Shown piece by piece: positions 1-25,594 of a DNA stretch of 64,000 bases. The notes beneath the pieces are model-generated. The model did no database searches and was not told the origin of the DNA. It was given only the letters and a program-made list of their open reading frames with translations. The position numbers and the translations under genes are program-made. The stretch comes from Trichoplax adhaerens (Eukaryota; Animalia; Placozoa): the NCBI RefSeq assembly GCF_000150275.1, contig NW_002060957.1, forward strand, positions 1,104,445 to 1,168,444, in the 5' to 3' direction. Positions within the stretch are counted from its first letter, which is position 1. Each line of letters starts with the position of its first letter.

Positions 1-3000
1 TAGGCTACTGCTGATTTCCTATGACCCAGTTTCGATTTCTGAGCTATTTAATCAAAGATTCTATTTACTGCTTTGGTTTAGAATTTTACAGCGTGGGAAT
101 TATTCCAAATCAATGACTTAAAATTGTGGTGCTTGACATTTCTATCCAAGAAAACGGTAAGCGTAATGGCTATCACAAAAATGTGTAGTTCGAAGAATGG
201 TAATTGGTATTTAATCACAATCTACCCGAGCCATTTATTTTTTGGACCTGTTACTTGGATTTGCTGTTCTTACTGATTTTATTTGTTCTTTACTTTTGTT
301 TATTATCTAGCATATGATTGCATCTCAAATTGATCTTAATAAATTTATAATTTCGGTAAGTATCGTCTGGTAATCATTGCACGAATCGCCTACAGAATTA
401 AAATTGGTATTAAAATCCTTTTTAGATATTGAAATTAATCCATAGCTTTGTCGAAGAGGGGTTATATCAAGATATGGAAATAAAATCATTAATAAAATCC
501 ATTTCATTCATAATTAATGGAAGCATGGATACGCCTTATCACACTATACCGATGAAAAGTATGCTATATAGGATTAAAAATGATTCTGATGATGACTTTA
601 GACATAGTGGAATTAATAATACCTTACTATATGGTACCAGTCCTAGTAGGTCAGGCTTTAGAACTTTTGAATTTTTAATTATTTTAAATTCAGGTTATAC
701 GATACTTCATAAAGAGAATTTTTTACATGTATCCAATTTTAATTAAGTATAATGTTTCGTTGTTATAGGCTATAAATTGGTAGAATTTCAAGCATATAGG
801 AACAAAAGTAGATTTGAACGGAGTAAAGAAAATGGATTCATGGCCGAGGCAAAGCGCAGGTTAATAGTTTATTGTATAGACTTTGAATTCTGATATTTTT
901 ACGCCTATTGTGTGCAATATTTTATTCTAATTTAATATTTGTTACTCCTTGTAGGGTTCTACGTACTTTAGAAATGATATTTAAAAGGCAATGCTATCAA
1001 TATGTAAAGGTGAATATATTAGAATGATGAATTATTCTTAAGTTTTTAAAGCTATAGAAAATTGGAATAACAACCAACACTTGAAATCTTATCTCTATTA
1101 TAGCGATTTATACAGGAATTTAGACATGTTGAAAGCGAAACTAGAAGTAAGAAAAGAAATTTCAGTAAGAAATTTAAAGGCAGCGATAAGTTTGTAAGTC
1201 ACCAGATTATTTAATAGCAGCATATTATTTGAAATGAAGGATAGAGCTGCTATCTATTTAGGAAAATATTTTTAAAATTGTGTTATATTGGATTATTTTC
1301 AATTAGGCTTTTTTAACAAAGATGATGCAAATTCACAATTCGGAGGCTGTTATCGCCTCTATTAGGTGTGTATATTACAGTATTGATGTTTCTTCAAATT
1401 GTTAGCATAAAATGGCTATAATGGTTCTTTTTTCACTTCTTTTATTTCTGCTAATGAATTAATCTTTAATGCTACAGATTAGATGATCAAGCTAAATTGT
1501 TCCTAGATGGTCTTCGTGACGAAACGACAAATTGGAACAAGTTTGATTCAGAGTTCCTGTTATTGGTATGACGGGCTGTGGACTAAAATATTCAGCTCTA
1601 TCATTTATATTTCTTTTATTTTGTAATAAGCTACTACATATTTTCATTACTATTATAATTCCCTAGATTTTAAATTGGAATAGCGCATTTTTCGAAGTAT
1701 CGTGTCACTATCATTAACATTTCTTTTACTTTGCTTTAAGCTACTACATGTTTTCATCACATTTATAATTTTAAATTGCTATACATTTTTTTAACTGATA
1801 ATTAGGACCTTACTAATTATAAATATGAGTGCATTAGTAATAATGCAATCGCAGTTTTAAGTGCCAGATATTCTATCTACCAAACATTATTTACCAAAAG
1901 CAAAGAAATCCAGGTAGGTTTAAGATTTTCAAATGCTTTGCTGTCATACATACGCTCATAAGAGGGCATCTTCAAAATAATTAATTTCATAACTAACTAT
2001 TAATTGTGATTTATTCTCTCACTAAAATTCTATTTAAATGTTCATTAGTTACTTAAAACTACAAAATCGATCCAACTGCATGATGAGGTTAGATTGTAAG
2101 CTTAGAAAGAAACCACTTCAATGTGATTGCTATCCTAAATTGATTGTGGACCAATATCGTTATCTAATAACATCGTATTCTGCTATCATAAATCTTCTAG
2201 ATTCAACAACAAGTAAAAGTGTTGTTTCAATTATTTAATATCCAATTGAATACGAAAATTCTCTACGATATATCTAAAATAATCGAAAAATTTACGAGGT
2301 TAACCTAATGATTAATCTTTGATAGAATTTTTTAACCCATCAAAACATGATCTGTGTTACCGTTTACAGTTTATGTAGCCTGCGTGGTGATGACGAAGAA
2401 CCTCATCCCATAAATCAGCAGTTACTATATAATTGCGGAGTCTTTCACATTGTCTTGGACATGGTAAAATTGGATGCTGGTGATTACACCGAGGTTTGAG
2501 AAACACTGTATAATTGTGACTTAAATTCCTATTAAAGTTAAATCTAGTCTTTTCATTAATGCTTTCACCTATACCAGTAATACTTAATTTTATTCTTGGG
2601 TGTTGCTATAAGTTGCTCTATCTGAAATTGTTCTACAGGAAGTGAGAAAATTTTTACCTAATTTGATACGTCAAGGGTATAATTTGCTACGGAAATTAGC
2701 AAGGTTGATATATCAGATATAAATAAGTGCTACTAAAACTGATATAAATATAATATTATTCACTCTATAAGCTAAAGACTTAATATATTGAGAATTTATT
2801 TAATTGTGAGCTATATACTTGTTCTCAAATTTTACTTGTCTGGTGAAATAGGAAAAATCGAATTATACAAGAGCAATTGTTTGAACGTATAGATATCTTA
2901 TTAGCTAGTGAGAGCATATTTTTAGAGAAGATCTATGCCTTAATAGAAGTAGGCATTAAAATTAAAATTACATGAATAGATCGCATGTCGCTCTTTTAAC

Positions 3001-6000
3001 AAGATTTTAACTACTAACTATTGAATAAATTACTGATAAAGACCATTTTTTTGGGGTCACTACAATTAGACTTTTGCCGGTAATCGAGCTACTTGCTGTA
3101 AGATTCGAAAGCAACATGTTGAGAAAATAATGGTATTACTAATTAAGAATCCGCATAAGCCACTATTAATAGATTTACTCTCCAGTTTCATCAAGGTAAG
3201 CTCTATGACAGTAGGGAGAAATTAGTAGCGAATGGTATAATGGAGAATCAGGTCAATTTTTTGCTTATTACACATAACTAGCTAGGGAAGTATCATGACA
3301 GGGTGATTTTATTATTTTTAAAGGCTTCTTGATTGCGATTTGTTCCCAACTTTAGCTAATATGTGATAGCAAAACAGCTACTCTATCTATATAAATTATT
3401 GCCTTTAAAATGAATTAATCATGCAAATTTCTTGCACATTATTGATAAAATTTAGATGGACTAAGGGATACGTGATCGTATTATTCTGAAAGGATTATTT
3501 TTTTGATAAATGTAACAGCTATGCTGCAGAGATTGTGCGGCTATAGTTTGATTACTTGTAGTTCCTCCATGTCTGCCCTCACCTAGTGATTTATTACTTT
3601 TATGAAATTTGAATGAATTTATTGAGAGTGAATAGATAACTAGGTTTATCAGGTTAATATTTGAAAGTCGTATCACAAATATCTATTTATTAGTTTTCAC
3701 AAAGCCCTGACTGCTTATTAAACAGCGGTAAAGTTGAGCAACGGCTACTAAATTTATAGCAATCATTAATTACAATATCGTAAAATTTGTCTTTTTGGTT
3801 CAATATCTAATTCAAGTTTATTTCAATGATATATCAATCTCCTGCAAAGGTTGATTTATTAAATCCACCTATCCTTCGAAATCAAGCCATAATTTCAACG
3901 GCAGTTTTGGATCATCAATCAGAAGTATTGGACATCTTGAGTGCAGAGAATAAATTAAAAAGGTTAGGCTGATATAATATTGTTTTATTATTATTTTTTA
4001 ATTTCGTCGGAGGCTAAAGCATATCAAATACTAAAATGGCTTGTTAACTACTAGACGTCATTTCATACAAATGGGTGCTGATCATTATGGATTACTTTAC
4101 TTGCTAAATATGATCAATCTTTTATCTCAATGTGCTGAGGTTCGTAGACCGTCTAGCTAATGGCTTTGATTAATGCATATCCTTATAGCTTACTAAAAAG
4201 TCATCAAAAAATGTATATCCTTCTATAATTTCCCCCAAAGTCGCATGATTTTAATTCAGATCACATATTTGCCATATCTCTATCTAGGGTAATAATCACT
4301 GTCTTGAGTCAATTTGTCAAGAATTACTACCTATAGATGAAATTTTCGATGTAAGTATTTCATCAATGGAAATATTTCCAGCACGATCGCGCCATTTATT
4401 GATCTTAAAAAGCCAAGATGCTTAATTATTCATACAGTAATCATTTATTGATTTTTATTTCTTAAATTTTACCAGGTATTGCTGGAAATAAATATTCCAA
4501 TCTACATTAAAATACCATATTTAAAGTATTTGACTTCTGTATATATGTACGCTGGGAAAGATGAAACAGAAAAATTAATGTTACAGACTCATCTAAAAAG
4601 GTAATATCCTCAGCTTTTTTCTGTCATTTTGTTCATCTGTAAATTGTAGTGCTTTGGATAGAAAGAAATTGATTGATTATGGTAGCAGTAATAATAAATT
4701 TAAGCATGAATTAAACACGATTTAAGTTTAAAATCTTTTGCTTAACAGCGATCTGTGGTCGTTTATTCAAAACATTCTGCAAATCCTACAAGCTTTAAAT
4801 GATCAGATTAATCGACAAGTAAAGTCAGGCGTAGCTGGCATCAATCGTTTACGTTTTATAATGAAGCGGAAGAATATTTTACTATTAAATGGGTTAGAAT
4901 ATTGCAATATCACATTAAATTCAGCATTATTAATACGACATCTGTTATAAAATGAATATGTCATGGTTCCCAACAGCACCAACAAGGCTGGACTCGAAAA
5001 TGGTATTTTCATTTACCTATTTAATGGAATACTGCCTTTTCTACAAGTTAGTGGAATTGACCTTTCAATATCAATAATGCAGAGTTTACTACACATTAAC
5101 TTAAATAAGGAGTACTTTTGTAATTTGGTGCCTAAATTATTGTATTATTAAATTTGCAGGTATATTTTGAATTATACTTTCAATTTGAATCTGAAGATGA
5201 TTCAGTTTATCATGGCCAGATGAAAGTAGTTAGGGAATTGACCTTGCTACTTCATGTAAGTTCATTTAATTAGAATTACTTACAGTTACAAATTTTATTT
5301 CTGCTACGATTGTATTAGCATACTCATTTTATAATTTCTTCTTATAATCTTATAATACTGTGTGATTCATGTCTTCGAATATAATAACATTTCTGTTTCC
5401 CAAAAGAATATAATTATCTTGCTCTATTATCACAGCAACTGGCGAACAATACTATCCGAGTCCTCACTGACAAACATCAGTTTCAGATTTTGAAAGACAC
5501 TGTAATTTATCTCATGCTTAAATTTAGTAATATAATACAGGCTAAAGTAAGTAAAGCAAAAGAATTATTTACATTTGATCAGAAAATATATCAAATTATT
5601 ATACATGCCTTGATCAATCCATTCTATCTATCAGATCGAACAATCTGAATACCATCCATTAGATTTAATCAATCACGATTTTAATGCAATTAATCCTGCT
5701 CTTCAAGTTAGTTTTCACTTTTAAAACTTACCATGAATAGATCTAACAACATTACATGAATCGTTAGTAATAATCTATTGTACTTGATATCGATACAATT
5801 TCAACGAGAAAAATCTTTTTTTAATTTCTAATACGACAGCATTATAGAGTTGTATACGGTGAGGAAAAGCGCTTAAATAAGCTGTTTTCTCAATACGTTA
5901 ATAATTTTCGAACTACTTATGCCAACGGAAACATTATCAAGACACAACCAGAAAAAGATGAGATTCCCTTGGCAAAACAAGGTGAGATATACAGCCTTAA

Positions 6001-9000
6001 AAGCGTCAATTTCTTATTAATTATAACTGCCGTAATTTTGCTCTCAGATATTTGCATAATTCAAATTTATAACTAGTTATAATAACTTTATGGCTCTAGA
6101 TATGTCATGATAATCATAGCTATAAAATATCAGCAATAAAATGTAAAAGAATTTTACATTAAATAAATTTTTATAGCACTTATAAATAACTTCTGTATGT
6201 TAGCTAACATCGAATTTGGTACTATGAAACTACCACTTGGCAAAGAATTCCAAGATTATGTTGCCTGCTTTACTTCCACGTATGTTGTATTAATCTTTTA
6301 ACTCTTAGTTACTACAGCATATATAATTTCTAACTTAATACTTCGGTTTTTTCATCGATTACTCGTGGCTTTATCTAGTTGCTAGCTGTGAGACAAAGCT
6401 ATAGTGATTTTCAGTTGTTCTTCAGCTGATTATTATGATAAATTGACTTGAGTATTCCATAATTTATTATTCTTGTCTACTTCATTTCAGACATTCTGTT
6501 GTTCATCAATCCATTGCTAGCATTATTAGCCAGCTTGGGTACGTTACTTTGATATGCATATAAGAGGCTAAGCTATCATTTTATTGGTTACCCAGAAAGT
6601 ATGCATTTAAGCAGGACTTTCTTTGCTTAATGATTTCCTTTATCTGTCATCTATTTTGTACAGGTCAGTATTAAACGATAATACTGATACCGAAATGGAT
6701 AGGCAAATGAAAAAACAATTATATATTCGATATCTGCAGGTTAACATGTTACTGATATATTATTGAAATGATTTCAGTAGCACTAACACAATACAGATAT
6801 ATGATTGGAATTATTGACATCAATATTTGTAGGTTCTAAGGGCTACTATCCATAACGAAATTGTTCGTTTACCATCTAAAATAAGATACGAGCCATGGAA
6901 ATATCGGCAAAGGTGATCAGTAAGCTAGTTTAATCTTTAGTTTTCCATGTTGTTTTGATGCCCGAATTTTGACGACAATTGTAGGCTCACGGGAGTTAAG
7001 CATGCCCAACAAGCTATATTAGTAGACAAAACGGCTGTTTGCAAGGTTTGCATGTTGCAAGATATCTGAAGCAAAGCTCAGAATAATTAAATTACTAAAT
7101 GTTTGCCTGTGCAGTATCATAGACTACAGATTTTTTCATTCAACTCTAGATTCTCTCACTGATCGTCCATCCCTGTAGTGATATAGTTCGTGAAGTCCTT
7201 GCACTACTAGAAGTTTTACTATATGGCAGAAATTCTAAAATACAAGTTTGTATAGTCTGATGCTGTTGCTAAGTATTGCACTTATTCTTTAATTTAAAGC
7301 AACATAGTCGAGAAGTAAACTGTTCTATAGTTGTTAACTAGCTTGAGCATCTAATTCTATTTCTTTATTTATTATTGTCACAGGATCTGTTTGAGAGTTA
7401 CTTGTTAGGTACAAGAGAGGAAACATTTTTTATGGAGGTCCATAGATACATTCTAGTTTATATGGATAACATTAAGGAAAGGTAATATAAGCCTATCATC
7501 GAAATGTAGAGAAAGCCAACTTTTCGTTAGTTATGATATACGGTTAGAAATAGCTATGCGATAAATAAGCAGATGACTGTTGCCGATTCTAGGCAGCAAT
7601 TAAAGCGTCTAAATGATTGGAAAGAGCGAAAATTAACAATTTTAGTAAGGCATCATCGCATTACATGCCCTTAAGGTGTTCTGTCTGGTATTGATTCTAT
7701 TCCTGAGTAATTTTAAAATCTATTTTCAATCGACAGCATGCCGCACTAAAAACTAGCGGCCATTACAAGAAATCCTCGGAGTCAGTAAGTTTTAAAATTA
7801 ATAATATGATTTGATTTTTGCGGGCTCACTTGAATAACTGAGACTTTAATATCATACTGGTATTCCTCTTGCAATGACAGGCTATCACTTTAAAACAAAA
7901 TGAAGATGAAATAATGGAGGTGACTTTTTAAAACCATTGCAATTTGCACTATAATCTCAATACACTGTGTATATGAAAATGGAGGGTTTTGGATTTATAT
8001 ATTTTATCTAATTTTAATGTAGTGATTTACACATATTTACTTTCAATAATTATATGCAATTCACAAATAATAGAAATTGGGTCAGAATTCCAAGCCAGTT
8101 TTGGATAATTACGAATATGGGTATATCAAACTCATTTTAGCCATAATTGCTGGTTTATGCGATGGTCATCGCTACTCGCTACAGGTAAATTGTCAGAAAA
8201 AACTAACTTTTGTGATCAAAATTTGGTTGCTTGAATTTTTGGTAGCTTTGACATGGACGCTTAATTTAACTAAATAGGATTACATTCGATATCAATGGAA
8301 CCATATTCAATCATTTGATATCGTATCAGACTTGGCTTTATTGCTGAAAACTATCTGCCAAGAAATTGACAGCTATGATGTGAATATTCTCTGCCAGATA
8401 CTACGCACGCTTTCTAGCCTGTCTCAAGTAAGTTTAGCTAGGATCATGAAGTTTAAGGGTTTAAACTATTTTATGGAGGTTAATATAGCATTGGTGCGTT
8501 CTTGAACTTTAAAAATCTATCATCAATTGTAGTCTATATGATGATATAGATGTTCAGTGACCATTTGAACTTACCAAGATCTTCTCTTTTGGTAGGGGAA
8601 CGAATTAAATCAGCAGCTACTGCTCAAGTATAAAGTTCCTTGTATGCTAACGACCATATTGAGAGAATTGAATTCCACATGTTCCTCTCTATGGGTAAGC
8701 ACTATGCCCAGCTCCAGCTTCAACTTGGTTATATATATTTCTATCTACTAAAGAATCAACAAAAGTGCAACGATAGCTTTTATTAGACTCGTACTAGAAG
8801 TCTTTGTTATTAATATTACTGGCATATGCGTCCATTAAATCAATGACTACTTAATATTTTTCATAATTTGGTATCTTATCTGTTTACTTTGCTAATTTAA
8901 CGAACTGTTCATAATTTTTCTATCAACAAAATGGTATCATTTGATCTCTGATATACTTCTGTTTACCTCTAATAGGTTGTTCAATTAGAAAACGCATGCC

Positions 9001-12000
9001 TAAACCTATATTGGCATTTTCTAGAAAGTACTGAAGAGATAAGTGACCAACTCTTTAAGGTACCAATGCTACTAATGGAAACTATTAGCTACTAAAGAAA
9101 AAACTGATCAACACTTTAAAGTCTTAATGATACATTTTAGCTTTAAATAGCCGTCATTAATAGAAATTTGTTTGAGTAAAATTACTATAATTTCTTACTT
9201 AAAAACAGTTGTCTTCTTGCAACTTTAGGAAATGCAAATGGCTGATTATCAATTGTTTCAATTAATCCTTTGCAGTCTATATGAGCAAATTACTGCCGTA
9301 AGTACAATATATATCAATATTTGCTGGACATTGTAATGTAAAATTATACTTTCATACTTTACAGACTACATAACTGCTAAAAGTTGATTGTATACAGTAT
9401 AGTATGATATTCTACGGCTGCTCTAATGATTGCATACTTTAGCCCATATCAAGAGAATCCAATAGCAGCCATTTGCAGGGAGAAAATTGTATTCAAGCTG
9501 GCATAATGTTGTATCGAATAATAATGCGGTTAAAGGATGCAACTGATGACCATGGTGAGATATGGAGTGATACATATTTAATTCATCTATAACCAATTTC
9601 ACACTTTATATGGGAAAAGGCCTTTTTATACTACTACTAGATTGTCGTATTCACAGCAAGATTTTTACGGTAAATACGTTCTAAAACGGTCATAGAATAA
9701 TGAAAAATATTCCAATAGGGAAGCTAGGCTTTTATTTGTTTGATAACTTGGCTGAAGAGAATGAAAGTAAGAATGAACTATTCAAGCAAAGCCTTAAATA
9801 CTTTTCTCGGTACATGGACTGCGTAGAAATAGTTTATAGGAAGAAATTCTACAAGTTAAGGTTTCAGTTTGATCGCAAGGTGAGTAGTATTAATGATGTT
9901 AAGGTTTGGAATGTAACTGCTATCATTTTCTAATATTCCATAGCTGGCATACGAGCATGATCAGTTCTTTTGCAGTAATTATATTTCTATTAGTCCATCA
10001 CTAATTTATTTTTTAGCCTTTATTGAATCATGCACATTTACAGAAGCATTTTGCATATCGTGAGCATAATATATCTTAAAAATGCTATGCTAGAATATTG
10101 TATGTATAATTAAGAACGGTGGTTGATGGTTCTAGTGTTCTGTAATAACTATAAATTTATGTGATCATTCTAGCTTAACTATAAATCTAGTCGCTGAAAA
10201 TTAATACGTATTTTATATTTATTTAATATCAATATCGGGTACTATAGCATATCGATGTAGACTATTTTAAACCAAGGATTCTGCCTCACAATCTAAACCT
10301 TTCGAGAGAAATGCGCTTACGTGAATTGTTTAATGCTGCGAAAGATGCAAACCATCACGTGGAGAAAATATCTACTTTAAATAAATTTGGCAACCAATTA
10401 TATCGGAAAAAGTATACTACTTACCCACATACGCTTGTAATCATAGCTTAACAGCTTTATTGAAATTATATATAAATTGGCTTCTTTTTCAGGAATATCT
10501 ATCAGTGTATCTATAACTTAAGTACCTTGATGTTGGTTATACTGCTCATCTTTTGGAATATGCCTTGCAAAGCTGAGCAAAACAAGTAAATAGAGTAAAT
10601 GAAATTTGAGATTGTATACTAAATAAAATATTAGATACTTCAGTGCAAGATGAATGACCGTTATTTCGCTATATTTAACATATAAATTAAACTAGAAATT
10701 TGAAGGAAATTAAGATGCTTAGCGCAACATAAGTTCATGCTCGCTTTTAAATTTTCTTAGGTTTGGGTTACCGTTTTATCAAATTAGTACCAGGCTTGCC
10801 GCAATTTTATCACTGTTTGGACTAGGTCACATGGGTGCTTCAGTTGGGATAGTTCTGATATACTCTATTGAAAATAAACTATTCTTGCCACAGTTCATCG
10901 ATTATACTAGGTAGGTCGGCTGTCATAAAGTGGATTGGAACTTACTTTTTTCACGAAGGCATGAAATGAAAGTAGCAAAGTCTAATTAAATTTGTTCTAT
11001 CATACAGTATATCATTGTCACTGTTTAATTATCGTCTTCAAGAATTGCTGTTCCATTTAATGTGGAAATAATAACTGCTTTTAATTATAAAGTAATTTAG
11101 GGAGCTTAAGCCTAACAGTGAAGAAAATTTGCAATCTTGAGATCTTCTTGAAAATTGTAAGTAAATTGTATACAAATATGAAATTATTTTTTGGGTATCT
11201 CTCCTATAAATGGGCTCAATGATTGATAATGTTGTTTAGTTCTACTTTGAAACTTTGGATGGATAGTAGCAGTATTATCAGCACTTGAACGCTTTTCCTG
11301 TAATGAGCTTTACAACTAATTATAATATTCAATCTATTTGATTTATTTGGATTGACAACTGAAATAGTTTTAGCTATTGCATATCTTGCACACGAGCTTT
11401 ATAATTTTCATTTATATATTTTAAATCTTTGTATGGGAAACATATATGAAATAACAATGTTCTCCGTACTTTGCACTTGTCCCATAAATGAACTTTATCA
11501 ATGATGATATTCAATTTTGTTTCATGTTTTGGATAATAATAATGTTTTCAACAGTTGGATATATGTTTCCCTAAATAAATTTTCTATCTGATGATATTCA
11601 ATTATATTTTAAATTTTCGAATAGATTCTGATGATATTTTCTGCCCTTGGATTAGTTTATCAATCCTATTTTTATCTGCTTGCTGGCATTATTGTACTAA
11701 TCGATATCTATTCGGAGAGGACATGGAAGAATGTATCCAGTGAGTCAAAATTACGTTGCTATCTATATTCATAGAGAGTGTTAGCATATGATTTGACATG
11801 TTTAAAAATTATAATTTCTATATCCAAGGTACATTCCCACTCCAACATTTACTATCGATGGCAGCCATTTTTTATGGTCTACTAGAAGTGATATCAATCT
11901 TTAAAATAACCTCTGCCCAAAGTGGGGTGCTTATGACTCCATTAGTTAGGATGGCATTATCTCTGGTAAACAGTTGCTTATAGTTTATTAGCCCTGCTGA

Positions 12001-12780
12001 TTCCTGGTTAGATCCAATCTATGATTTATGCTGGTATTTAATTTTATTCTTGGTATCTTTTAAATTAGAGTTATTATGGGAATGAAAATCTAGACCAGAC
12101 CAGTAGCGTTATTTTGCCAGCTGTTGGGTTGCTTAATTTTGTAGTATTGCTCATTATTGGCAGCGTAATGATCACTATTCGCACTTTTCAGCGGGTGAGA
12201 ATTTACCAAACTTTATCATCATTCTCCTTTAGCTTAATTTTATTTTAAACTTTAACAGTCAAGGCTGCCTATACTGCTATAACTATTTCAATGTCTTGCT
12301 GGGTTAATAATTAATTCATTGAATGTAGAAAAAGCACCCCAAGATCGCAGCACAAAAGTGCTATATTTGCAATACTACTAGAAAAGCATTTCAAACAACG
12401 AGACAGGTAATTAATATTCTAAGTTCTAATAGGCCACTCTTTGAAATATCTCGGAAAGCTAACGAATTAAAATCATTACTACAGAGCTTTGATGATCATG
12501 TCTATCATCGGCATAAATTGGGATCATATTGGAAATTTCTCATTTACCTGCAATATACTCCTATCTGTCAGCAAAGTAGTTTAGAATATTACGTTTATAC
12601 GAAAGTAATTCTAATTTCATTTTTGCCAATTTTTCAATATCTCCAGATGAATGCTTAAGAAATTGATTCTAATAACATCTTGTTTATTCTTATGTACTCT
12701 CATAGATTCAGAAAGGCGATATTGACTTTATACCAAGGGCGGAGGAGAAGATTTTAATGAGCCATCCAGACGCGCAGTAG
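1..12780 (+). CDS. Divergent inositol 1,4,5-trisphosphate receptor / ryanodine receptor superfamily channel-like protein; multi-exon, 5' part outside the window
   Basis: Hand-spliced GT-AG exons give ITPR-collinear segments. RIH region: LCSLRGDDEEPHPINQQLLYNCGVFHIVLDM (~2370), TFAGNRATCCKIRKQHVEKIM (~3070), GNNHCLESICQELLPIDEIFD (~4290), VREVLALLEVLLYGRNSKIQ (~7190). RIH-associated domain: IKLILAIIAGLCDGHRYSLQ/DYIRYQ...ILRTLSSLSQ/GNELNQQ (8080-8620). TM exons lie at ~11625-12194, the Zn finger KCYIC...FDDHVYHRHKLGSYWKFLIYL at 12329-12604, and the last exon IQKGDIDFIPR...DAQ* ends with TAG at 12778-12780. Confidence 0.88.
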
Positions 12781-13159
12781 GAGTTTCATCGTCGTTCTTG
12801 TTAATTACGTATTAACTTAAATTTAAAACTACTGAATCCTATCCTACGTGAAACAATTAGTCAAAAGCTGTAGTGAGGCTTGAATTCTTCGATGTCCCCC
12901 TTCATTCAATATATATCATAGCCCGGAGGCAGTACAGATAATTAATCCATTTACAAAGTCGAAAAATTATATAGTACTGTACTGTCTGTTAAGTATTCAA
13001 TGAATGTCATTAATGAAGTTACTCGGCCATTCTTAGGCTATTATTTTACCAGATTTTTAAAGGTAAATGCCAAATATTACTAGAAACGTAATGTAATGTA
13101 CTATACGTCATATATTGTGTTAATAGAATTTTTAAAAGTATCTAACAATTATTAGGATC

Positions 13160-14180
13160 ATGAATGATTTAACTAAATTTTAAATGTATTTATTGAACTT
13201 CCATTGGGATCAAAAGTAGCGTACGTATAATTACAAAGATTATTAACCATCTAAGACTTGATGATTTTGTCCTGCTGCTGTTGAAACAGCTAAGCGAATA
13301 ATTTATTTAGATAGCGAATTTCAATTGGAATTATATCTAACGTCAATATTATTGTACAGATTGTTAAATTTATGTGAGAGTTTATCCACTCATCGTGCTA
13401 TTATTGAAAATCATTAAGCAAATAACTTCGCTCATTTTAAATGTATTTATTGGATTCCAATTAGAATTATAACTACCATCAATACGATTACGCAGATTAA
13501 CATATACATTTGGGGATTCCTGCACTTGTCGTGCAACTGTTCGGACTAACGAAGCAAATAATTATAGCTTAATTCATTTTACTTGTATTTATTAGATTCC
13601 ATTTTAAATTAAAACTATCGTCGAAGTAATACTGAGAATAACGAAGTGAATAATTAAAGTTATTTTATATGTATTTATTGGATTTTAATTGGAATCAGAA
13701 AGTGCGTTGGTGCACTTATGCACATTACTAAAGTCATCTCAGGATTCAAGCCTATCGTGCTGTAATGGAAAATGAAAGGAAGAATTATATTTTTAACTCC
13801 TTTAAAAATCAATATATTGGATTCCAATTGGAATCATAATTGTCGTCAAAACTATATTGAGAATAACTAAGTGAATAACTGAATAGATTTTAAATGTATT
13901 TATTGGGTTTCAATTGAAGCCATAAGAATGTTTGTTGTACTATTGAGCAGATTGTTGTAATCATCTAAAGATTTATGCAATTGCTATTCTATTTAAAAAT
14001 AGTGAAACGAATAATTTAACTTATTTTATATATATACAAACTGGATTCCGAATACAATTATAATTGCTGTCAAGAATATTTTAACTCATTTCGTACGTAT
14101 GTACGAGCTATTAGATTTCGATTAGAGTCAAATTGTTGTCACTATTACTGTAAAGGTTATCAACTATATAAGAGTTGATA
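13160..14180. repeat. Degenerate AT-rich tandem array (~8-9 units, 80-150 bp spacing)
   Basis: A core resembling aaatgtatttattggattccaattggaatc recurs near 13181, 13438, 13582, 13668, 13811, 13892, 14040 and 14110. Confidence 0.75.
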
Positions 14181-24730: not shown

Positions 24731-25594
24731 TTTACCAACGGTATTTGCAAATCCAGCTGGCTGCAATCGCCTATGTCAACATGACTTGACGTCAAGATAA
24801 CTGCTACTACAGATCACTACCGATGCGATCTAAACCCCTTCCGGGAAATCGCGAAAGGCATTGATTTACAGTAATTCAAGTGGACATTTTCCATCGACAA
24901 ATGGCAAGATCCCAAGCCATGACGTAATCTTTTTCCCCATAGGATGAAATAAACGACCGAGGGGATGAAATTTAAATCAACCTTTGCTGAAAGATTGGGC
25001 GTATACTCCTATCTATCCGCCATCTCAGCCAATGGATAGTATTTTGAGCCACTCTTTCCGCTGGAAGTAGTGTAGGATAACATGTCCACTGTGAGACATG
25101 TTGATGACAGCATTTTGGCTGCAGGTTTCTATGGCCTTTTCTACCGTCATAGACAGCTAAAACAATCAAGACGGCTCCAAAAAGGGGGAGGGAAAGGAGG
25201 TGCAGCCTCCAGTTTTAAATATGCCAATTTAATTTGACACTCCTAAAAAGAATGATAGGCGTTCCCGCTCGAGTGCATCCAAGCAGCAAAGACAAGAAAT
25301 GGAAGCACCCGCTGCTTGTCTTCTATTCGATAGGCGGATCATCAGTAATAAAGAACCAGGTGTTGAGCTGATAGACAAGGTCGTTATTCTGTTGCAATCT
25401 GCCATGACTAATCTCTCTCTTGTATTGTATAGGTTGATTTCTCTCTTTTCAACCGGTAGACATGTCGAAAGCAAATGGCCGGTAGGTGTTGACTACATGC
25501 TCATCATTGGCAGGGTATTGCAAACGTCGTGGAAAAAAAAACAAGCATCAGATTGGTCGGGAAGTTAGCCCTTATAATATCATCCTTCAACCCA

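Follow-up and report, generated by a model that had tools for sequence, protein, structure and literature searches.

The IP3R-B proteins are a non-vertebrate branch of the inositol trisphosphate receptor (IP3R; ITPR) and ryanodine receptor (RyR) superfamily, and the Capsaspora member reportedly neither binds IP3 nor releases Ca2+. In Paramecium CRCs and some oomycete ITPR homologues the selectivity filter is reported to depart from GGG(V/I)GD, and the luminal loops to be shortened (PMC3213138, PMC7399828). Here we describe a gene of this superfamily that lacks the glycine filter, located in a 64-kb window of the Trichoplax adhaerens genome (G000:C1400:1104445-1168444; 'window' denotes this whole stretch of analysed DNA). 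The gene resembles Paramecium CRC-III, V and VI and the oomycete homologues in its aberrant filter, short luminal loop and only partly recognisable domains, but these are protist proteins, in most of which a GG(V/I)G or GGGLG core survives (PMC3213138, PMC7399828), whereas the Trichoplax gene has no glycine run and belongs to an animal that also has a canonical IP3R and a RyR. In the literature searched we found no relevant description of Trichoplax IP3R-like genes, of the pore of this filter-less gene, or of IP3R-B pores. Insensitivity to IP3 would fit such a divergent paralogue, which is a possible member of the IP3R-B lineage.

The filter-less gene is real, intact and expressed. Sequence comparison indicates that its loss of similarity to the rest of the family is limited to the module formed by membrane segment S5, the pore loop and segment S6. 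The reading that we favour, with a probability of about 0.45, is that the product is a tetrameric membrane protein of the endoplasmic reticulum (ER) type whose P-loop pore may have been rebuilt, with altered permeation. Genome scans covered the 105.6-Mb assembly (1414 contigs), and contigs of four public runs (X1, X5, X6 and X12) were aligned over window positions 8000-13500.

Pore, S6 and calcium-sensor positions

The initial annotation, made from the letters of the DNA, had described a protein without a GGGxGD filter, with the S6 Asp apparently lost and with almost no luminal loop. All three traits were recovered. The patterns GG.GD and GGG.G are absent from all six frames of the gene, and GGG.G is matched just once in the whole 64-kb window, by a GGGKGG at 25184 that is unrelated. 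The RNA-confirmed exons read ...MALSL/SYYGNENLD... where the canonical IP3R and the RyR of the same genome have GGGIGD, and the glycine run of the filter-equivalent stretch is gone. In the RyR gene (C1414; filter at L005 ~5370-5340, S6 GLIIDAF) an intron interrupts the Asp codon of the filter (GGGIG/D), and single-frame motif scans therefore miss it. The S6 of the filter-less gene, LLIIGSVMITIRTF, has lost the Asp of canonical IP3R S6. Its signature position reads GSVMITIRTF, and from G(V/L)IID(T/A)F only Gly and Thr are kept in the motif and the stretch that follows (GSVMITIRTFQRKKHPK). Between S5 and the putative pore helix there are ~10 residues, against ~72 in the canonical Trichoplax IP3R. 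This short loop is not unusual by itself, since the loops of the RyR and of a divergent paralogue on contig C1411 are short too.

The cytosolic side of the pore is changed as well. Acidic residue rings at the cytosolic mouth of RyRs promote cation flux. In the filter-less gene the 22 residues starting at the S6 hinge Gly carry a net charge of +6; the corresponding value is -1 for the canonical IP3R and -4 for the RyR. Furthermore, alignment with the RyR, the canonical IP3R and the C1411 gene places Asp (LCDGHR) and Ser (LSSLSQ) at the positions of the two Ca2+-sensor glutamates. These correspond to the Ca2+-activation residues E1978 and E2042 of rat IP3R1, and in mammalian IP3Rs the exchange of a sensor Glu to Gln abolishes agonist-evoked release while Glu to Asp strongly weakens it (PMC9522344). 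As a separate observation, the canonical Trichoplax IP3R (L004:9134-9250, C1410) reads LLCENHN where the RyR and mammalian IP3Rs have LLCEGHN, with the Glu intact and Asn instead of the following Gly.

How far the divergence extends was judged from global alignment scores of exon pairs, expressed as z relative to 500 shuffles. The S4 exon of the filter-less gene aligned to that of C1411 with z = 6.3, and the zinc-finger/C-terminal exon gave z = 5.1 with C1411 and 5.8 with the canonical IP3R. For the S5-P exon the values were 0.9 (C1411) and 0.3 (canonical IP3R), and for the filter and S6 exon 0.9 and -0.07. The pore of C1411 itself aligned to the canonical IP3R with z = 12.2 for S6 and 6.1 for S5-P. 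By this measure the loss of similarity in the filter-less gene is limited to the S5-pore-S6 module, and the loss in S6 is specific to this gene and not shared by C1411.

Since similarity is lost in the pore only, the S6 extension is basic and the sensor glutamates are changed, the evidence leads away from canonical Ca2+ release, and we infer that the protein would be unable to act as a canonical IP3/Ca2+-gated, high-conductance Ca2+-release pore. It could then be a non-conducting ('silent') member of the family, which would fold and form tetramers, either by itself or together with the canonical IP3R or the C1411 protein, and serve as a regulator, scaffold or sensor with the membrane domain as an anchor. 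Such a role would suit the loss of similarity in S5-P-S6 only, with hydrophobicity kept. Filter glycines, S6 Asp and acidic residues of the vestibule have all gone, the mouth on the cytosolic side is basic, and the Ca2+-sensor glutamates are changed, which would suit it too. However, a P-loop of normal length with a Glu and an Asp is kept between S5 and S6, and so are the S6 hinge Gly and the zinc-finger linker involved in gating, which a pure anchor would not need. The initial annotation had offered both a channel of altered selectivity and a non-conducting subunit, and both are live readings; we regard a silent subunit as somewhat less probable than altered permeation. The retained P-loop, hinge Gly and gating linker speak for altered permeation.

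Family membership and paralogues in the same genome

The proposed membership of the ITPR/RyR superfamily is supported by a RIH_assoc domain above the cut-off, by an S4 that can still be recognised, and by zinc-finger residues spaced as in the canonical gene. On window positions 8278-8502 the Pfam search gave RIH_assoc (PF08454) 30.7 bits (cut-off 28.5), and the genome scan gave it 33.8 bits. Four genes of the genome carry this domain: the RyR (C1414), the canonical IP3R (C1410), the divergent gene on C1411 and the filter-less gene. One upstream exon at L002:5066-5326 matched MIR with 24.9 bits (E 2.2e-5), against a cut-off of 25.6. Short tblastx high-scoring segment pairs (HSPs) linked N-terminal exons to those of the canonical IP3R, for example WNQPFRLRHL with WNSLFRFKHL; the canonical IP3R matches were N-terminal and weak. 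Upstream of the window, where the IP3-coordinating basic residues of beta-TF2 and ARM1 would lie, the counterpart of the canonical exon with ...FLRTTAR... can be recognised, with a tentative border. The exon-by-exon search found no Ins145_P3_rec in the filter-less gene. RYDR_ITPR (PF01365) was likewise not matched in an exon-by-exon genome scan that is insensitive for short exons; in the same scan it was strong in the canonical IP3R and the RyR and reached just 20 bits in C1411.

Hydropathy gave five clear peaks, of which the second (S2-S3) must contain two helices if the six-segment topology is to be kept. The exon at 11625-11739 was considered as S5 and rejected, as it resembles the S4 of the C1411 paralogue. 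The zinc finger, which the initial annotation had also listed as kept, reads CYIC-16 residues-HVYHRH (CxxC...Hx4H) and has the spacing of the canonical CFICG...HTKEEH. At the C-terminal end, ...LEYYVYTK IQKGDIDFIPRAEE... is the counterpart of ESYV...DWFPR. Because the last exon codes for just 24 residues before the stop, a C-terminal coiled coil is missing.

The gene has the domain order of the canonical IP3R (ITPR1-3; G000:C1410, ~2342000-2358000): a putative beta-trefoil/MIR part, helical repeats with RIH_assoc, a six-segment membrane domain, a C2H2 zinc-finger linker whose Cys and His residues are spaced identically, and C-terminal E-YV and (F/I)PR motifs. It lacks GGG(V/I)GD, the GVIIDTF of S6, the long luminal S5-P loop and a C-terminal coiled coil; the stretch after S6 is basic instead of acidic or mixed, and the sensor Glu pair is replaced by Asp and Ser. 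Two extra helices between S1 and S2 also appear to be absent.

The C1411 gene (~G000:C1411:1093000-1115400; pore exons L003:4763-4954 and 5278-5424, ~1113760-1114425) is closer. Tblastx gave 24 ordered HSPs from L002:3651 to window position 12607, with a sum E of 1.7e-39, collinear along the whole gene. Because this collinearity begins at L002:3651, the filter-less gene is taken to start ~7 kb before the window, near L002:2970, and to span ~20 kb. The two genes share 30-57% identity in conserved exons and a short S5-P loop. C1411 also has no GGGxGD (GFLSGFHE; P-loop ...GIRVGFLSGFHE/ALGPTNQ...) and has CDG, not CEG, at the first Ca2+-sensor position. Unlike the filter-less gene it keeps a canonical S6 (IIFGIIVDTFSELRQEK, IIFGIIVDTF), a Glu at the position of the filter Asp and the Glu of the second sensor site (LIEYS), and its C-terminal tail is longer. 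It also keeps CFICS. By these comparisons the filter-less gene is a strongly diverged ITPR/RyR-superfamily paralogue, and its nearest relative found is the C1411 gene of the same genome. As C1411 is without GGGxGD too, the glycine filter may have been lost before the two genes separated. Placozoans might keep an old filter-less ITPR branch formed by both, in which the release pore was converted to something else. In the filter-less gene, the basic cytosolic mouth and the missing carbonyl filter would then produce either an anion-permeable or other non-cation pathway, or a non-conducting sensor with a new use for the giant cytosolic machinery. We consider such a conversion unlikely; if true, it would be the first case of this kind in an animal.

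The other homology searches used exon-sized queries. HMMER with the S5-P exon against 1.84 billion representatives returned no relative, its sole match being an unrelated repeat protein (P0001). A homologue search with the open frame 12329-12655 was blank, which says little because the length window of the search excludes full-length kin. Exon 9721-9879 retrieved no relative from metagenomes, single exons hit neither ITPR nor RyR entries in PDB sequence searches, and Pfam had no match on the pore exons.

Transcription, splicing and constraint

The window DNA has ~30% G+C, and the exons are short and separated by introns of ~80-470 nt (Table 1). Run X12 is RNA-Seq on record (metatranscriptomic), and X12, X5 and X6 come from three studies under two organism labels. 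Spliced contigs in these three runs had 11740-11828, 11966-12068 and 12195-12328 removed, with GT..AG ends. The exon pair claimed in the initial annotation, 11829-11965 and 12069-12194, was matched by the identical junctions 11739/11829, 11965/12069 and 12194/12329 in three runs, one of them RNA on record, and translation of the exons gave exactly the spliced peptide proposed there. The remaining joints in Table 1 were seen in the same three runs, as were 9059/9229, 9297/9443, 9879/10248 and 12406/12485, all with GT..AG ends. An irregular joint at 9552/9718, which carries an extra C, is explained by the normal 9554/9719 intron together with a T>C difference at 9553. In run X1, which is probably DNA, the introns were covered and there were zero joints.

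Table 1. Exons of the filter-less gene in window coordinates. Joints are written as last and first exonic position.
Feature	Position	Strand	Evidence
Upstream exons, helical ARM-type regions	1..8073	+	24 collinear tblastx HSPs to C1411, MIR match; exon borders putative
Exon ending ...AGLCDGHRYSLQ; first Ca2+-sensor position (canonical LLCEGHN Glu) is Asp	8074..8184	+	Splice sites; alignment with RyR, canonical IP3R and C1411; contig end at 8072
RIH_assoc exon; second Ca2+-sensor position (canonical LTEY.QGPC) is LSSLSQ	8278..8427	+	Pfam; joint 8427/8596; alignment
Six exons between RIH_assoc and membrane domain	8596-8694, 8976-9059, 9229-9297, 9443-9554, 9719-9879, 10248-10411	+	Joints in X12, X5, X6; frame check
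S1 exon	10493..10585	+	Joints 10411/10493, 10585/10761; hydropathy peak 1.96
S2-S3 hydrophobic region exon	10761..10910	+	Joints; hydropathy peak 1.96; two-helix split inferred
Short exon right before S4	11093..11156	+	Joints 10910/11093, 11156/11625
S4 and start of S4-S5 linker	11625..11739	+	52% identity to C1411 S4 exon; z = 6.3; joints
S4-S5 linker, S5 (HLLSMAAIFYGLLEVISIFKI), short luminal loop, putative pore helix PLVRMALSL	11829..11965	+	Joints 11739/11829, 11965/12069; hydropathy
Filter-equivalent SYYGNENLD (putative), then S6 (VILPAVGLLNFVVLLIIGSVMITIRTFQR)	12069..12194	+	Joints; translation
Basic S6 extension and CxxC half of zinc finger	12329..12406	+	Joints 12194/12329, 12406/12485; translation; charge +6
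Hx4H half of zinc finger and E-YYV motif	12485..12604	+	z = 5.1 vs C1411, 5.8 vs canonical IP3R; 35% tblastx HSP
Last coding exon (IQKGDIDFIPRAEEKILMSHPDAQ, then stop)	12706..12780	+	Joint 12604/12706; stop 12778-12780

By computation, the frame that runs from 9229 is uninterrupted until its stop codon at 12778-12780. The preceding exons 8074-8184, 8278-8427, 8596-8694 and 8976-9059 are all in phase 0 when the DNA is read with the observed junctions, which gives ~650 codons from 8074 to the stop with zero stops and zero frameshifts. Among the runs, 17 exonic differences were classified, 8 synonymous and 9 non-synonymous, over 354 synonymous and 1356 non-synonymous sites. The ratio of non-synonymous to synonymous polymorphism per site (pN/pS) is 0.29 (one-sided binomial p = 0.014). 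The two pore exons hold 2 synonymous and 2 conservative changes (V to I, P to A), and the SYYGNENLD codons show no listed difference among four runs.

These data bear on the possibility that the gene is becoming a pseudogene, still transcribed but released from selection, with the odd pore as the product of neutral decay. Its divergence is indeed extreme, single exons matched no ITPR in PDB, neither RYDR_ITPR nor Ins145_P3_rec was recognised exon by exon, and a pN/pS of 0.29 lies above that of strongly constrained genes. Against decay stand the long open frame with GT..AG at all junctions from 8074 on, the identical spliced form in three runs under two organism labels, non-synonymous differences significantly below expectation, and the exactness of flanking motifs such as the zinc-finger spacing. 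The polymorphism together with the open frame and the consistent splicing argues against a pseudogene, as the initial annotation had held from the frame and the zinc finger, and we consider decay very improbable.

An artefact of the gene model, in which a canonical filter comes from an overlooked or alternative exon, would find its best candidate in the 468-nt intron 11157-11624, the largest in this part of the gene. It contains a 65-codon hydrophobic open frame at 11307-11501, and a low-depth X5 contig covers 11388-11570. This contig runs past the end of the open frame, however, and so looks like unspliced RNA or DNA, and the junctions of the pore exons are identical in three runs. Because GG.GD and GGG.G occur in no frame of the gene, an overlooked filter exon is practically excluded. 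The open frame 11307-11501 was rejected as an exon, as RNA places it within the intron; it could be a relic, a rare alternative exon or unspliced RNA, and it has no similarity to the paralogues.

Downstream of the gene, transcript contigs extend at least 720 nt 3' of the stop (window 12781-13500), which would be a long 3' untranslated region or an overlapping neighbouring transcript. A haplotype-like pair of contigs differs at 13008, 13027, 13032 and 13062 in X5, X6 and X1, and X12 has the variant form. A joint that goes back by 67 (13500/13434) lies at the edge of the examined stretch 8000-13500.

Proposed function

A rebuilt pore with altered permeation could work as follows. Firstly, the scaffold of the family is kept, with a putative N-terminal beta-trefoil/MIR part, RIH_assoc and six predicted hydrophobic membrane segments including a recognisable S4, as is the zinc-finger linker that couples the cytosolic domains to S6. 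Secondly, the ion pathway is changed: YYGNENLD stands at the putative place of GGGxGD, the S6 motif retains just its hinge Gly, a basic run has taken the place of the acidic residues after S6, and Asp and Ser occupy the two Glu positions of the Ca2+-activation site. A P-loop pore would persist, with a luminal ring of Glu and Asp in place of the carbonyl filter and a basic cytosolic mouth, and permeation would probably be much lower or differently selective. Lastly, gating would respond to signals other than those of the canonical Ca2+ site. The P-loop topology, the formation of tetramers, the ER location and permeation itself are predicted from the sequence.

Several points weigh against this reading. 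The placement of SYYGNENLD as the filter rests on a weak alignment, and an ungapped count back from the zinc finger would put MTPLVR there. Similarity in S6 is wholly lost, so that the gate itself may be gone, which would speak for a non-conducting protein. The pN/pS ratio comes from a small sample of differences, and seven more were left out of the classification. Finally, the exon-sized searches returned no orthologue from another species.

The pore signature of animal IP3Rs and RyRs is regarded as invariant, and yet an early-branching animal has canonical copies beside two paralogues without it, one of which has lost similarity in the pore module only. Should the protein conduct, it would show how much rebuilding the ITPR/RyR pore tolerates. 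Otherwise it would be a natural silent subunit of the ITPR family and would show which roles the large cytosolic assembly has besides Ca2+ release. Either outcome would bear on the unexplained IP3R-B lineage, which was lost in vertebrates.

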